Virus record (IMG/VR): IMGVR_UViG_3300022744_000020
Location: 186,001-250,000 of that record
Reading direction: 5' to 3' (one strand)
Length of the DNA stretch: 64,000 nt
Shown here: positions 5,238-54,375 of the stretch, piece by piece
Numbering within the stretch: position 1 is the stretch's first letter
Layout: the number at the start of each line of letters is the position of its first letter
Program-made: the position numbers and the translations under genes
The notes under the pieces: model-generated
What the model saw: only the letters and a program-made list of their open reading frames with translations
What the model was told of the DNA's origin: nothing
Databases searched by the model: none

Positions 5238-5247
5238 TTCCTCCTCC

Positions 5248-5299
5248 ACTGGAGTACCCTCTTGGCTCAAAAGGCCAAGAGGGTACTCCAGTATTTTTT
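5248..5299 (+). terminator. Long terminator hairpin, CAAAA loop
   Basis: 20-bp stem ACTGGAGTACCCTCTTGGCT/GGCCAAGAGGGTACTCCAGT followed by a T run. Confidence 0.85.
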
Positions 5300-7347: not shown

Positions 7348-8058
7348 ATGCCCGCCCAATCCGAAAAAGAGTATTACACCCCCGTCGCACGATGTATTGG
7401 CGGGGTCATCCAACTTAACCCCCTTAACCCACTGGACGTCGGCTCTTTGGATGGTTTCTTAAACCGTAAGGTTTTCGAAGATCGAGAACCTATGCTGGTC
7501 TCCGAGTACCTCCGAATCAGCAAGGATTTCTGGAGAGGCGAAGGTCCGAGAGACACGCTGGACATCATCTACGAATGGAAGGACGAGCTCCATGTGGTTT
7601 TGGAGTATTTAAAAGCGGAGAGTCCGGCTAGGATGCGGATTAATGCCAGAGTCCTGACAAAAGCACTCGCCGAAGTGGGACAACTGGGAGATCACCCGCG
7701 ATTGTCTAATGTGCGCGAACTCTTCGCTCTTGGCGGACACAGCCTTTTCCCAAAGCTGAATGTTCTCAACGCTGTTCACTATCACAAAGGAATAGCTAGG
7801 GGAATGAAGCCAATCTGGAGGGACGAGTTAGAAAACGTCGGCTTCTTCACGGGCGAAGTAAGAATGATGGTTCAGAGGAAGCAGATTCTTTCGTATTGGT
7901 TCGGGGGCAATGGTTGTGCTGAAATTGAACTGAGTCCGTCTGAACTGGCTTTGATCATTGGGTCCAATAGTCAGCCAATTCGGATCAGTTATCCATCTCC
8001 AGACATTGCGGAGTCTGTTGCTGAATCCCTTGAAAAGATGATGGGTTCGTTGGGCTAA
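7348..8058 (+). CDS. Hypothetical protein, paralog family A
   Basis: C-terminal ISYPSPDIAESV; AAGGAG RBS. Confidence 0.8.
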   Translation: MPAQSEKEYYTPVARCIGGVIQLNPLNPLDVGSLDGFLNRKVFEDREPMLVSEYLRISKDFWRGEGPRDTLDIIYEWKDELHVVLEYLKAESPARMRINARVLTKALAEVGQLGDHPRLSNVRELFALGGHSLFPKLNVLNAVHYHKGIARGMKPIWRDELENVGFFTGEVRMMVQRKQILSYWFGGNGCAEIELSPSELALIIGSNSQPIRISYPSPDIAESVAESLEKMMGSLG

Positions 8059-49189: not shown

Positions 49190-49975
49190 ATGATTTCCTT
49201 GCAACTCGCTTCAAAGAAAGAAGCTTTTGATTTCTTCCCTGGCTTTGAAGACATCTGGCCCTCCAAATGGAGCGAGCAAGCCATGGTCGCTACAACCGAC
49301 TGGACTCTTGATGAAGCCGATGGAGAGATTTTCTACATTCTTAACGACGGCAAGAAGATTGGAATTACTGGCTGGTGGCCGTTATCCGAATCAATGGCCG
49401 GGCTTCGCTGGCATGGCGTCATCCCTGAATGCCGAGGTCATGGATTTGGAAAGCAAGCGCTTATTTACCTTACCAATCGTCTTGCTTCAAACTACAAAAA
49501 ATTGATCGAAGTCACCATGAGTGATGCACCGATCAAGTTCTTTCGTTCTTTCGGATTCGAAGAAATTACGGACCCGATCTTGATTGAATTTACCAAGAAA
49601 TTGGTAGGGGATTACGGACATCGTTTTTTGGAATTTCGATTGGAGGAGAAGCGGATCTCGTACAAAGACTACGACTATCCGTGGGATTGTGTCAGCGTGT
49701 TTAAGCTGACCACAGAACATTGGGGCCCCTCTTATCGGCTGGATCAATACTGGCGTGGGTTGGGTCCTGGCCAGAATCTTTTTGTGGAAGTTTCATATTT
49801 CAAACTAGGAACTGAGAATAACGACCACAAGGTTTTGGTTCGTGGTGGGGACGCCGGTGGAATGGAGCGTACGTTCCCAGGACGGGCGGCAGCAAAAGAG
49901 TTCTTTGATAAAATTGTGGAGTTGCCAAGGGTTAACGGAGCAGAACTCAAAGCCCTAGGCTTCACCTACATTTAA
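49190..49975 (+). CDS. GNAT acetyltransferase fused to an unknown C-terminal domain
   Basis: WHGVIPECRGHGFGK motif A; FFRSFGF motif B. Confidence 0.8.
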   Translation: MISLQLASKKEAFDFFPGFEDIWPSKWSEQAMVATTDWTLDEADGEIFYILNDGKKIGITGWWPLSESMAGLRWHGVIPECRGHGFGKQALIYLTNRLASNYKKLIEVTMSDAPIKFFRSFGFEEITDPILIEFTKKLVGDYGHRFLEFRLEEKRISYKDYDYPWDCVSVFKLTTEHWGPSYRLDQYWRGLGPGQNLFVEVSYFKLGTENNDHKVLVRGGDAGGMERTFPGRAAAKEFFDKIVELPRVNGAELKALGFTYI

Positions 49976-51805: not shown

Positions 51806-51850
51806 ATACTGCCCCTTCCTCAAAAAGGAAGGGGCAGTATGCTTTTCTTT
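51806..51850 (+). terminator. Long terminator hairpin, CAAAA loop
   Basis: ATACTGCCCCTTCCT-CAAAA-AGGAAGGGGCAGTAT plus T-rich tail. Confidence 0.85.
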
Positions 51851-51904
51851 TTCTTTTATTCTCTGCCGGCAAGTAAATTCTCAAACTTAACCAGGAGTGC
51901 ATCC

Positions 51905-52495
51905 ATGCAACCCCTTAAGCAATTGATTTTATTGCTGTGTTTTCTGTTCAGCACCAATGCGTTCAGTCACACACCGCAGTGGATAACTCACCAAACTAAA
52001 GGCCGAGTAAGTCAATCTCTGGCTGTAAAAATTGTCTCTTTTGTGCATGCCTACTCACTCAAGCGGGATCTAGATCCTGACTTGGTGTTTCGGTTCATCA
52101 CGGTGGAGTCAGGGTTTCGATACAATGCATTATCCAAAGCCAACGCTCGTGGATATATGCAAGTAGTACCACAGTACCACCCTGAAAAAATAAGAGGTCG
52201 CAACCTCTTTGATCTCGAAACCAACATTGAAGTTGGGACGGCAGTGTTTCAAGAATATCTACTCAAGTATGGTGACGTTGATAAAGCCATTCGCGCTTAT
52301 CAAGGAAATCATCGCAGTGATGTCTACTTGAACAAAATTCGAGCAGTCAAGTTTATTGACTATCCGAATTACTACCCCAACACATCCCTCATTCCTGTCG
52401 AGTCGAATGCTGTAGATTTTAATGAACCTACATCATCAATTTGCGACGAGTTAGATCACTACGCTTGCATGCCTGACGAATTGCGTCGGCCATAA
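51905..52495 (+). CDS. Secreted SLT-domain lytic transglycosylase
   Basis: Signal peptide; ITVESGF (catalytic Glu), ARGYMQV, AIRAYQG. Confidence 0.88.
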   Translation: MQPLKQLILLLCFLFSTNAFSHTPQWITHQTKGRVSQSLAVKIVSFVHAYSLKRDLDPDLVFRFITVESGFRYNALSKANARGYMQVVPQYHPEKIRGRNLFDLETNIEVGTAVFQEYLLKYGDVDKAIRAYQGNHRSDVYLNKIRAVKFIDYPNYYPNTSLIPVESNAVDFNEPTSSICDELDHYACMPDELRRP

Positions 52496-52563: not shown

Positions 52564-53103
52564 GTGATCAAATCACTCAAATGGGTCTTGATGACCCTGA
52601 TTTTAAGTCTTTCGATTCCCTGCTTCCCGATGTCGGTGCAGTGGATTCAGTATGCGTCGTCAAACCGCATCGATCCCATCCGGGCAGTTTACCTCAAAGA
52701 CATGATTGCCAGGATCGCCAAAGAGAAAGGCGTGCCGGTAAAGCTGGCGCATCAACTGATCTCTACCGAATCTGCATACATTGCCCGAGCCAAGCACGGC
52801 CCAGCAGTAGGAATGACCCAGGTCATTCCTAGGTTCCATCAAGATCGATTCTTGACTGGAAACTATTACAACGAGGAAAACAACGTCCGAGCCGGGTTGG
52901 ATTATTTGGCAGAGTGTTTGGAAGATGCTCACGGTAATCAGGCGGTCGCTCTGGCTCTGTACAACCGAGGACCGCATCGATACGCATACGCCAGCAAAGT
53001 CCTTCGGGTGAACTTCAAGATACCAGCTTCATTCCATCGCTCTCAAGCAAAGAAACAATTGTATGCGAGCCGCGACGTGAGTCGACCACGGAGCAAGGGA
53101 TAA
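52564..53103 (+). CDS. Second secreted SLT-domain lytic transglycosylase
   Basis: Signal peptide; ISTESAY, AVGMTQV, ALALYNRG. Confidence 0.85.
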   Translation: MIKSLKWVLMTLILSLSIPCFPMSVQWIQYASSNRIDPIRAVYLKDMIARIAKEKGVPVKLAHQLISTESAYIARAKHGPAVGMTQVIPRFHQDRFLTGNYYNEENNVRAGLDYLAECLEDAHGNQAVALALYNRGPHRYAYASKVLRVNFKIPASFHRSQAKKQLYASRDVSRPRSKG

Positions 53104-53149: not shown

Positions 53150-53460
53150 TCAGTGTACTCTTCTGTTATCGAGAGTAATCGTGACGGGTGAAGACTGGGC
53201 TCGCCGGCCCCTCAAGTCGTGTCCTGTAACCCATGATCTGCTTTGAAATGAGTAGCACGGCAATTGTTCGGGATAGCCCCACCCAAGCCCAAACGCCATC
53301 GAGGTGAATGGACTAAGATAAGTAAACTCAGTGGGGCTCTTACGGTTGTATGCACGCACGCGACAACTCGTGAATTTACAGAGTGCGCAAATAAGAAATT
53401 ATTTGTTTTGCACATCTGTTGCGTGAAGACGTCGAGTGATGTTCTTCTAGGGTGCACGTT
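53150..53460 (+). ncRNA. Candidate ~310-nt structured ncRNA
   Basis: Intergenic; helices TACTCTT/GAGAGTA, GACT/AGTC around GGGC/GCCC, AGCCCCAC/GTGGGGCT, nested ACTCG/CGAGT, ACAGA/TCTGT, CAAATAA-GAAA-TTATTTG. Confidence 0.45.
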
Positions 53461-53473
53461 TTGGAGGCGGATC

Positions 53474-53698
53474 ATGGAAAGATTCGAGGTATGGATTTCA
53501 ACATTCTGGGGAATGGGGCAGATCCAGCGTTCTCGACGGGTGTACGTCTGTCAGGCTAAGACTTTTGACGAGGCGTGCTCAAAATTTGTCGAAAGATACC
53601 CCGAGTACCGAGAAGGTTGGAAGCCAGAGTCGCGACAAATTGGCTGGGATCAAAAGCTTTTCCCTTCCAAGAAAGAAGCAGACGCGTACTTGAGATAA
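53474..53698 (+). CDS. Small hypothetical protein (74 aa)
   Basis: GGAGG RBS before MERFEVW. Confidence 0.7.
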   Translation: MERFEVWISTFWGMGQIQRSRRVYVCQAKTFDEACSKFVERYPEYREGWKPESRQIGWDQKLFPSKKEADAYLR

Positions 53699-53708
53699 GG
53701 GATTTTCA

Positions 53709-53796
53709 GGGTCCTGTCCCAACACCGGCCTTCTAAGCCGGCGACATAAAACGGTTGGACGGAAGTCAAGAAGTTCGATTCTTCCAGGACCCCCCA
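53709..53796 (+). tRNA. Atypical tRNA-like RNA, Arg(UCU) anticodon arm, no D arm
   Basis: GGGTCCTG/CAGGACCC acceptor, CCGGC-CTTCTAA-GCCGG, GAAG-TTCGATT-CTTC T arm, 3' C-CCA. Confidence 0.7.
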
Positions 53797-53805
53797 AGTC
53801 ACCTG

Positions 53806-53862
53806 TCATACATTCACTCCAGAGTCCAAAAGACTCTGGAGTGAATGTATGATGCTTTTTTT
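53806..53862 (+). terminator. Long terminator hairpin, CAAAA loop
   Basis: 21-bp perfect stem TCATACATTCACTCCAGAGTC/GACTCTGGAGTGAATGTATGA plus T run. Confidence 0.88.
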
Positions 53863-53907: not shown

Positions 53908-54375
53908 ATGCCTGATAACCACACTCAGCTCTGGACCAGTATTCGCCCCGGTCAAAAATGGCATTTCACTTTGCTGGCGATCGTTCCGAACCATTGGCTA
54001 TCGAAATCGGGCCCGAGCATAAAGGAGAGAATTCAGCAGAATCCAGAATGCCTGAAAGAGATCCAGCGATTCACTGAAGACGGAAAAACTCTCTTTCATG
54101 GCGGTACCATGTTTGAGCTTAAAGCCACACATGGAGTTCCGCTCGATTTTCTGTTGGATAAAATTGTCAACGAGTTTGGCTTTGCTGTCAGTTGGATCGA
54201 TTTCATTGAACAGTCGCGCAAGAATGGGAGATGGGATTTCCAGACCATCAAAGAGATTGATTACGGCCTCAAGGACGCAATGATCGATCGACAGTACGCC
54301 GAAGGAATTCTGATCCGATGTAAGATCTACATGACACAAGTCGCTCACCCGCTTTTGAAGGAACAAACCAAATGA
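53908..54375 (+). CDS. Protein with an alanyl-tRNA-synthetase-like helical motif
   Basis: GGTMFELKATHGVPLDF...EFGFAVSWIDF resembles AlaRS G..AFKLYDTYGFPLD...E.G..VD..GF. Confidence 0.55.
   Translation: MPDNHTQLWTSIRPGQKWHFTLLAIVPNHWLSKSGPSIKERIQQNPECLKEIQRFTEDGKTLFHGGTMFELKATHGVPLDFLLDKIVNEFGFAVSWIDFIEQSRKNGRWDFQTIKEIDYGLKDAMIDRQYAEGILIRCKIYMTQVAHPLLKEQTK

Follow-up and report, generated by a model that had tools for sequence, protein, structure and literature searches.

A phage-borne tRNA-Arg(UCU)-like gene with a proposed split D arm

The 64-kb window analysed here (the whole stretch of DNA under study, from IMG/VR record IMGVR_UViG_3300022744_000020 and part of the 270-kb IMG/VR contig L050; coordinates are window positions unless a locus is named) carries an 88-base element at 53709–53796 (+), in a 209-nt gap between a small open reading frame (ORF) at 53474–53698 and another at 53908–54375. 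It has the anticodon arm of a tRNA-Arg(UCU), a T arm and an encoded CCA, with neither a D hairpin nor a 7/5 division of base pairs between the acceptor and T stems; just 8 nt separate the acceptor from the anticodon stem. What is such an RNA for? An earlier sequence-only reading left the choice between a functional decoder of AGA codons and a tRNA mimic or decoy. We conclude that the element is probably the gene for a functional elongator tRNA-Arg(UCU) with a split D arm. Covariation, invariant tRNA hallmarks, a setting in tRNA arrays, occupation of the Arg-UCU slot, anticodons confined to Arg, a match to Arg identity elements and the use of AGA codons together favour this conclusion.

The strings and coordinates given in the sequence-only reading are all present base for base at 53709–53796, and three of its proposals, the 8/4 stack of acceptor and T stems (8+4 = 12 bp in the window), the Arg-UCU anticodon arm and a helix closing around that arm, are confirmed by the sequence and by covariation. 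Its description of the D arm as absent is correct for the hairpin; however, a D-like stem is rebuilt in trans, and a GGA motif and a crossing helix had been overlooked. The parts are listed below, with the rebuilt D-like helix termed HD, the crossing helix HV, and family counts referring to 73 distinct sequences.

53709–53716 (+): acceptor stem, 5′ strand, GGGTCCTG, 8 nt, pairing with CAGGACCC at 53785–53792; 8/8 pairs covary in the family.
53717–53724 (+): 8-nt linker, TCCCAACA, from acceptor to anticodon stem.
53717–53718 (+): connector U, C, in the place of positions 8–9; the first linker base is U in 37/73 and C in 25/73.
53719–53723 (+): CCAAC, 5′ strand of HD, pairing with GTTGG at 53754–53758; 97–100% paired.
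53724 (+): lone A between HD and the anticodon stem, position-26-like; A in 62/73.
53725–53741 (+): anticodon arm, stem CCGGC/GCCGG (53725–53729 with 53737–53741); 99% paired, 5/5 pairs covary.
53730–53736 (+): anticodon loop CTTCTAA, with anticodon TCT (UCU) at 53732–53734; U33 and purine 37 are present.
53742–53769 (+): insert of 28 nt between the anticodon arm and the T arm.
53743–53745 (+): GAC, 5′ strand of HV, pairing with GTC at 53765–53767; C53742/A53768 is mismatched.
53746–53753 (+): A-rich single-stranded segment between the HV 5′ strand and the HD 3′ strand.
53754–53758 (+): GTTGG, 3′ strand of HD, partner of CCAAC.
53759–53764 (+): ACGGAA, with GGA at 53761–53763; the conserved motif of the family and a candidate equivalent of G18-G19-A20.
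53765–53767 (+): GTC, 3′ strand of HV, partner of GAC.
53770–53784 (+): T arm, 4-bp stem GAAG/CTTC and loop TTCGATT; the loop is invariant in the family.
53785–53796 (+): acceptor 3′ strand CAGGACCC (53785–53792), discriminator C (53793) and encoded CCA (53794–53796), read directly.

The minimum free energy (MFE) fold of the window element alone misses HD (z-score −2.4), and HD is clear only by comparison with relatives. The homology search proposed by the sequence-only reading provides these: after filtering, 104 loci with 73 distinct sequences were recovered from IMG/VR phage contigs, tRNA arrays in metagenome-assembled genomes (MAGs) and cultured phages. An exact search of IMG/VR with the anticodon arm returned mostly ordinary tRNA-Arg(UCU) genes (68 canonical genes share this 17-mer with the window) plus one locus, L031, with the same odd layout and other helices. 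Scans of IMG/VR for the layout pattern gave 15, 27, 97 and 77 stretches, and those of bacterial and archaeal contigs, at one genome per species, gave 15 stretches with 12 true members among 185,579 species genomes. The common plan is an 8-bp acceptor, a 4-bp T stem, an 8-nt 5′ linker, a normal anticodon arm and a 23–30-nt insert, amounting to 84–91 nt overall.

A blastn search of GenBank phages with one member matches 339 records, most of them 114-kb Vibrio phages; other carriers include ~30 Acinetobacter phages (T4-like Lazarusvirus and the 235-kb ME3), Aeromonas phages, Salicola phage SCTP-2, Escherichia phage Av-05 and Salmonella phage Arash. The Av-05 copy is at 7394–7478 of NC_025830.1 on the complementary strand, and that of Arash is near 33.4 kb in OQ632216.1. 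Among the matches listed, the gene lies under no annotation or a ‘hypothetical protein’, or the record is unannotated. The 1 kb around the window element has no blastn match among GenBank phages, and its homologues were found only via the short element of a relative. Its nearest relatives (72–75% identity) come from contigs of large phages, up to 249 kb long, and from tRNA arrays of Verrucomicrobiota MAGs; the contigs of the MAG arrays have few PHROG matches, of unknown function. No member is present in 5,426 complete E. coli genomes, and outside phages and phage-like tRNA arrays the family is essentially absent. An ARAGORN call of tRNA-Arg(AGA) reported for H20-like Vibrio phages is at most a possible member.

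The alignment of the 73 sequences has 94.6% standard pairs among its pair cells, compared with 69.5% in column shuffles and at most 52% when partners are slid by 1–3 columns. Compensatory changes are seen in all five helices, in phages of unrelated hosts. The eighth acceptor pair is formed in 65/73 sequences and an alternative fifth T pair is possible in 5/73, showing that the 8/4 split is real. The T stem is near-invariant as GAGG/CCTC, with GAAG/CTTC of the window as the sole compensatory variant, and the anticodon loop is invariant save for one CCU member. CCA is encoded in 63/73, and the discriminator is G in 29, U in 27, A in 14 and C in 3.

Helix HD, for which the sequence-only reading had proposed a covariation check, is 97% paired across the 73 sequences, with double changes at 4/5 pairs, and is complete in 72/73; one of its pairs occurs as CG (31), GU (13), AU (11), UA (11) and GC (3). 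It is predicted unprompted by RNAalifold, and MFE folds of individual members give it too. Helix HV joins bases just 3′ of the anticodon stem to bases just 5′ of the T stem (e.g. ACGT/ACGT, ACCT/AGGT, ACTT/AAGT, TGAC/GTCA and CGAC/GTCG). The 5′ strand of HV is enclosed by HD and the 3′ strand is not, which makes the two a pseudoknot. MAFFT shifts the HV register between clades, so that one pair is just 49% paired globally, and a clade-specific alignment and a shuffle-controlled parse were used instead. The alignment of the window's clade is 98.5% paired including HV, with HV itself 93% paired and double changes at 3/4 of its pairs; over the whole family a run of at least 4 contiguous HV pairs is found in 64% of members against 19% of shuffled controls, and in one large clade HV is reduced to a CC/GG core. 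The motif NNGGA lies directly 3′ of the HD insert strand in ~70/73 (ACGGA in the window), with GG kept at 90% or more.

A covariance model of the family (R1) scores its members at 71–95 bits and canonical tRNAs at no more than 30 bits. A second model, built from the 72 relatives without the window sequence and on RNAalifold's own structure, matches the window element over its full length with 86.0 bits (E ~1e-21) and with all modelled pairs standard. The next-best match of the family models in the window, at 5243–5293 (−), has 11 bits (E ~0.5–0.9); this short hairpin with the look of an anticodon arm was judged a chance match and not a second copy, and the window thus holds exactly one copy, a bona fide member. 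Standard tools pass over the element. The sequence-only reading expected a low score from tRNA finders, and ARAGORN indeed predicts no tRNA gene in the whole 64-kb window; nor does an Rfam scan at gathering thresholds (RF00005 included) give a match. ARAGORN calls one of the 104 family copies (L071) with a wrong fold consisting of a shifted, mismatched acceptor and a 3-bp ‘D arm’, and isolated ‘tRNA-Arg’ annotations may therefore exist without the structure having been noticed. A different tRNA-like sequence, at L108 9778–9856 (+), reaches 29.9 bits with R1; its loop is CTCCAAA (CCA, Trp), its insert is long and its acceptor pairs poorly.

Many of the genes sit among ordinary tRNA genes. A canonical tRNA lies within 300 nt of 40 of the 104 copies, on the same strand in every case: in Acinetobacter phage Stupor the element directly follows tRNA-Thr inside a T4-type tRNA cluster, in Acinetobacter phage ME3 it directly precedes tRNA-Met with a gap of 16 nt, and in Escherichia phage Av-05 it is placed between tRNA-Thr and tRNA-Cys. 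None of the 104 loci has a canonical tRNA-Arg(UCU) by ARAGORN. In the MAG arrays of 13–25 tRNAs the canonical Arg genes have the anticodon ACG, UCG or GCG and often adjoin the element, which itself takes the UCU slot. The tRNA regions examined in Stupor (7 annotated tRNAs), Vibrio phage D419 (18) and Av-05 (14) hold no canonical Arg tRNA, and at L144 a canonical tRNA-Arg(CCU) follows 2 nt downstream of the element.

Anticodon variation is similarly restricted. In two scans that left the anticodon unconstrained, it is UCU in all but a few members, the others being one CCU, one ACG and one degenerate GUA relative. The CCU member is one of a tandem pair on a 115.7-kb IMG/VR contig (L089 1449–1536 and 1543–1627, both +, 6 nt apart), in which the first copy has CCU (AGG) and 80.0 bits with R1, and the second has UCU, a T stem of GGGG/CCTC and 84.7 bits. 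The ACG member (L207 5689–5773, +) is of the 8/4 type with 64.8 bits, and the GUA relative (L208 11252–11340, +) has a Tyr-type loop, two acceptor mismatches, no CCA and 53.9 bits, and may be a pseudogene or a Tyr-type offshoot. Same-strand tRNA arrays, the filling of the Arg-UCU slot and variation confined to Arg anticodons all favour the AGA decoder over the decoy.

A second odd Arg tRNA-like gene occurs in the tRNA cluster of T5-like Vibrio phages, at L187 17930–18012 (+), corresponding to D419 OZ195672.1 ~65929–66011, and also at L188 and L189. It has a 7-bp acceptor, an 8-nt linker, the loop CTACGAA (ACG), a 23-nt insert and a 5-bp T stem followed by G and CCA, and its MFE fold pairs CCGU of the linker with ACGG of the insert around the anticodon arm. 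ARAGORN misses this gene, and the tRNA numbers of the D419 record jump over 0010 at that point. With its 7/5 division, ACG anticodon and the same topology, the gene extends the layout lacking a D hairpin beyond the decoders of AGA.

The AGA codon is used at 7.3 per 1000 codons in the window, or 11.8% of Arg codons, and at 4 to 38 per 1000 in the regions of other carriers (13.4 in Av-05), which is compatible with a need for a decoder and no proof of one. When the window ribonucleotide reductase is aligned with E. coli NrdA, its single AGA falls on a Lys and its single AGG on an Arg, too few codons to decide whether AGA stands for Arg.

In the cloverleaf, position 26 links the 3′ strand of the D stem to the 5′ half of the anticodon stem, and A14, R15, G18, G19 and, in Arg tRNAs, A20 come after the 5′ strand of the D stem. 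From the helices and their covariation, the family, its contexts and its Arg-only anticodons we infer how the RNA would be processed, which tertiary contacts it would make, and that it would be charged with Arg and used on the ribosome. Transcription would begin upstream, probably together with the small ORF, and be ended by the strong terminator that follows; RNase P cleavage and 3′ trimming to the encoded CCA would then leave an RNA of ~88 nt. Its 8-bp acceptor stacked on the 4-bp T stem would make up the usual 12-bp arm. The D hairpin appears to have been split, such that its 3′ strand (CCAAC of the linker) stays in place and is joined almost directly to the acceptor, while the 5′ strand (GTTGG) and the functional half of the D loop are relocated to the loop of a short variable arm. 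The latter would be closed by GAC/GTC, which crosses HD to generate the pseudoknot. Contact of the GG with the T loop could build the elbow, and with the anticodon stem placed on the 5-bp D-like helix, the 12-bp stack, the T loop and the GG would give an L shape of normal dimensions. The resulting tRNA would read AGA, and possibly AGG too, for the phage.

Arginylation could follow the ordinary bacterial rules, in which the identity elements are A20 (the main determinant for the E. coli arginyl-tRNA synthetase, ArgRS), C35, U or G at position 36 and a tolerant position 73 (PMC9976931). The family keeps C35 with U36 or G36 (UCU, CCU and ACG), an A next to the GG and a variable discriminator. The A of GGA could thus serve as the main ArgRS determinant, along with C35 and U36.

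Several points count against a functional tRNA-Arg(UCU). Every family member is known here from its sequence alone, and both the strand mapping and the equation of GGA with G18-G19-A20 derive from connectivity and not from a three-dimensional model. The slot-filling argument rests on stretches of 6–50 kb and not on whole genomes, and ARAGORN, used to find the canonical tRNAs, has blind spots of its own. Helix HV in the window is just 3 bp long with a C/A mismatch beside it, and the window uses AGA only moderately. In 30/73 members the acceptor begins with a G.U pair, unusual for bacterial elongator tRNAs, and one clade has G.U at the third acceptor pair, a determinant for the alanyl-tRNA synthetase (AlaRS), although the window copy lacks it.

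If the gene does encode a functional tRNA, its body plan could be phage-specific and maintained under selection as a counter-defence or insulation, offering no D hairpin or D loop to effectors of the host, or to the phage's own host-tRNA-degrading enzymes, that recognise or cut the D region or elbow, and still serving ArgRS, EF-Tu and the ribosome. We regard this as doubtful. Septu is reported to cut the variable loop of tRNA-Tyr (PMC13096335); the existence of defences acting on the tRNA body makes a remodelled D region reasonable as a counter-defence hypothesis only. The nuclease resistance put forward in the sequence-only reading is speculative. Because the anticodon loop matches that of canonical tRNA-Arg(UCU) genes exactly, escape from anticodon-loop nucleases through mutated loop bases can be set aside. 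Were the counter-defence idea true, tRNAs would have a structural means of evading immunity other than the anticodon-loop mutations reported to date, and this would be the first demonstration, in a translation system of cellular type, of an elongator tRNA that is pseudoknotted and has no D hairpin.

The alternative that survives best, unlikely as it is, is a tRNA mimic or decoy, processed like a tRNA and unused in translation, which would soak up a host nuclease or modification enzyme directed at tRNA-Arg, or act as a 3′ regulatory or processing signal of the upstream mRNA. The non-cloverleaf plan and scores below threshold with standard models are as such a mimic would have them, and the gene is solitary, outside any tRNA cluster, in the window and in Salmonella phage Arash. 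Defences that target tRNAs also exist, some suggested to cut D loops and one cutting acceptor stems including that of tRNA-Arg (PMC12916289). A decoy, however, is expected beside a canonical tRNA-Arg(UCU) and not in place of one, and the two do not co-occur at any of the 104 loci. The conserved 12-bp EF-Tu-binding arm, the encoded CCA, the full anticodon loop and the Arg-confined anticodon changes also fit decoding better.

Less probable still is a tRNA that recodes or mistranslates, receiving its amino acid not from ArgRS but from another synthetase (e.g. the seryl enzyme via the long insert, or AlaRS via G.U) and reading AGA as something other than Arg. Its 8/4 stack and long variable region resemble those of allo-tRNAs, which inserted Ser, Ala or Cys at sense or stop codons in E. 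coli (PMC5389517). The third-pair G.U could also be taken in its favour (e.g. L087, L095 from Av-05, and L179), but is limited to one clade and absent from the window. The variable discriminator fits Arg and misfits Ser (G73), Leu, Tyr and Ala (A73) and His, and the anticodons remain in Arg boxes; moreover, since the gene replaces the canonical UCU isoacceptor, mistranslation of AGA would be genome-wide. Within the G.U clade itself (L087, L090, L095/L219 from Av-05, L099, L154 and L179) the acceptor is GGGCGGTG/CACCGTCT or a near variant with G.U at pairs 1 and 3, and mischarging with Ala is conceivable there, G3.U70 being an AlaRS determinant.

A decaying tRNA pseudogene, an att-site remnant or a chance resemblance is very improbable: the D arm is missing, tRNA finders reject the element, and prophage ends often carry partial tRNA genes (seen among the canonical anticodon-arm matches), but conservation extends over the full length with compensatory changes in five helices, the leave-one-out model gives 86 bits, and both ends are intact with an encoded CCA and the element's own terminator, such that covariation effectively refutes this explanation. 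Hardly any probability attaches to a selenocysteine tRNA (tRNA-Sec) or an allo-tRNA proper, in spite of the 8/4 split and of a full-length tRNA-Sec match (RF01852; 27.4 bits, with the D arm deleted in the alignment) as the best hit of a permissive Rfam scan, as all members score 26–38 bits against a gathering score of 47, the anticodon is UCU and not UCA, the stack has 12 bp and not 13 bp, there is no 6-bp D stem, and both tRNA-Sec and allo-tRNAs have D arms (PMC5389517, PMC7609411). C4/CI-type phage RNAs were rejected, there being no Rfam match.

The immediate surroundings of the element contain two further features.

53474–53698 (+): upstream small ORF, likely start ATG at 53474 with GGAGG at 53464–53468; its stop is 11 nt before the element.
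53807–53862 (+): intrinsic terminator, a 20-bp stem with a 5-nt loop (hairpin 53807–53851) and a run of seven T (53856–53862), starting 10 nt past the CCA.

The small ORF is probably co-transcribed with the element; the promoter-like site at 53375–53402 is weak. The sequence-only reading placed a terminator 10 nt past the CCA, where it is present, with a stem of 20 bp and not 21 bp; the L031 copy also has a terminator downstream. Neither flanking ORF has a Pfam or PHROG match, and the 16-bit resemblance of ORF 53908–54375 to an AlaRS fragment is far under threshold and was discounted. Pfam and PHROG scans of the flanking ORFs and ten further window proteins reveal no synthetase, nuclease, ligase or CCA-adding enzyme as a partner. 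The window otherwise has the gene content typical of a large phage, including a ribonucleotide reductase, a helicase and two SLT transglycosylases; the SLT lytic transglycosylase domains are encoded by adjacent genes at 51839–52495 and 52564–53103 (+), ~0.6–1.9 kb upstream of the tRNA gene, and a GNAT acetyltransferase gene is at 49190–49975.

The tRNA regions of other carriers have additional features. RefSeq annotates no tRNA in the Av-05 region (L219; NC_025830.1 392–14478), in which ARAGORN finds 14 canonical tRNAs besides the split-D gene. In ME3 (L084 3282–3914) an unannotated stretch just downstream of tRNA-Met and tRNA-Leu has two group I intron matches (RF00028: 81 bits, above threshold, and 29 bits). 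Stupor encodes a tRNA with a CUA anticodon (L086 945–1019; L186 20795–20869) labelled tRNA-Pyl by both the record and ARAGORN, which is more likely an amber-suppressor-type tRNA of a T4-like phage. A dense tRNA array in a Flavobacteriaceae MAG includes a family member, a 4-base-anticodon tRNA call and a transfer-messenger RNA (tmRNA) with tag GETQLMAA (L183 1258–1611, −), and a 14-tRNA array with a family member in a Verrucomicrobiales MAG adjoins a gene for a 479-aa protein (L172 867–2306, −) matching PHROG 850 ‘RNA-binding protein’ (E 2e-45), possibly linked to RNA repair or RNA quality control.

A functional split-D tRNA, if confirmed, would widen the fold space accepted by ArgRS, RNase P, EF-Tu and the bacterial ribosome, and would mark an annotation blind spot in hundreds of sequenced phages (of E. 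coli, Salmonella, Acinetobacter and Vibrio), in which the gene is sometimes miscalled as a hypothetical protein. Analyses of phage tRNA content and codon usage would undercount Arg decoders as these genes are unannotated. The family would also provide a testable candidate for adaptation of the tRNA body, as opposed to the anticodon loop, in the arms race between phages and hosts, and a natural scaffold for orthogonal tRNA engineering.

To our knowledge, the cloverleaf is how every known elongator tRNA of bacteria and phages is drawn, and loss of the D arm is regarded as a mitochondrial oddity. No description of a bacterial or phage tRNA with the split-D architecture was found in the openly searchable literature, including the reviews of non-canonical tRNAs PMC7609411 and PMC5389517. 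The nearest counterpart is the canonical (argU-type) tRNA-Arg(UCU) of phages and bacteria, which has the same CTTCTAA loop, a TTCGA-type T loop, a 12-bp stack and the niche, common among phage-borne tRNAs, of decoding rare AGA codons, but has a 7/5 split, a D hairpin, a 5-nt variable loop and ~76 nt, compared with 8/4, HD and HV, and 84–91 nt in the split-D family. The (8/4) allo-tRNAs (Mukai et al. 2017, PMC5389517) likewise have an 8/4 split and a long variable region, are found in bacteria and phages, and are missed or misassigned by standard tools. They differ in having a D arm, a hairpin variable arm, Ser identity and very diverse anticodons, where the split-D family is pseudoknotted with Arg anticodons only; neither UCU nor a missing D arm is mentioned for allo-tRNAs in PMC5389517, and the analogy drawn in the sequence-only reading extends to the 8/4 split and nothing further. 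The tRNA-Sec family (RF01852) shares a long acceptor, a short T stem and a long variable region, and is set apart by a 13-bp stack (8/5 or 9/4), a 6-bp D stem and the UCA anticodon.

Mitochondrial D-armless tRNAs, e.g. nematode and metazoan mt-tRNA-Ser(UCU/GCU) (PMC7609411), are alike in having no D hairpin, a short connector and AGN decoding. However, they are ~55–65 nt long, have a flexible loop in the place of the D arm and no rebuilt helix, and depend on specialised organellar factors, whereas the connector strand of the split-D family is paired (97%), its members are 84–91 nt long and its context is phage. The length, the rebuilt D helix and the canonical T loop suggest use by the ordinary bacterial machinery. 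The 3′ tRNA-like structures of plant viruses and the tRNA-like domain of tmRNA also attain a tRNA shape by non-cloverleaf connectivity with a pseudoknot, but theirs are in the acceptor region and in molecules other than free elongator tRNAs; in the split-D family it is the D/variable core that is pseudoknotted, in a free-standing, tRNA-sized gene that includes an anticodon arm. Permuted and split tRNA genes (Cyanidioschyzon; Nanoarchaeum, Caldivirga) are similar in having a rearranged order of segments, although their processing restores the cloverleaf and the split-D order would persist in the mature RNA. The split-D element would thus be a tRNA with a new body plan, closest in function to an ordinary phage-borne tRNA-Arg(UCU).

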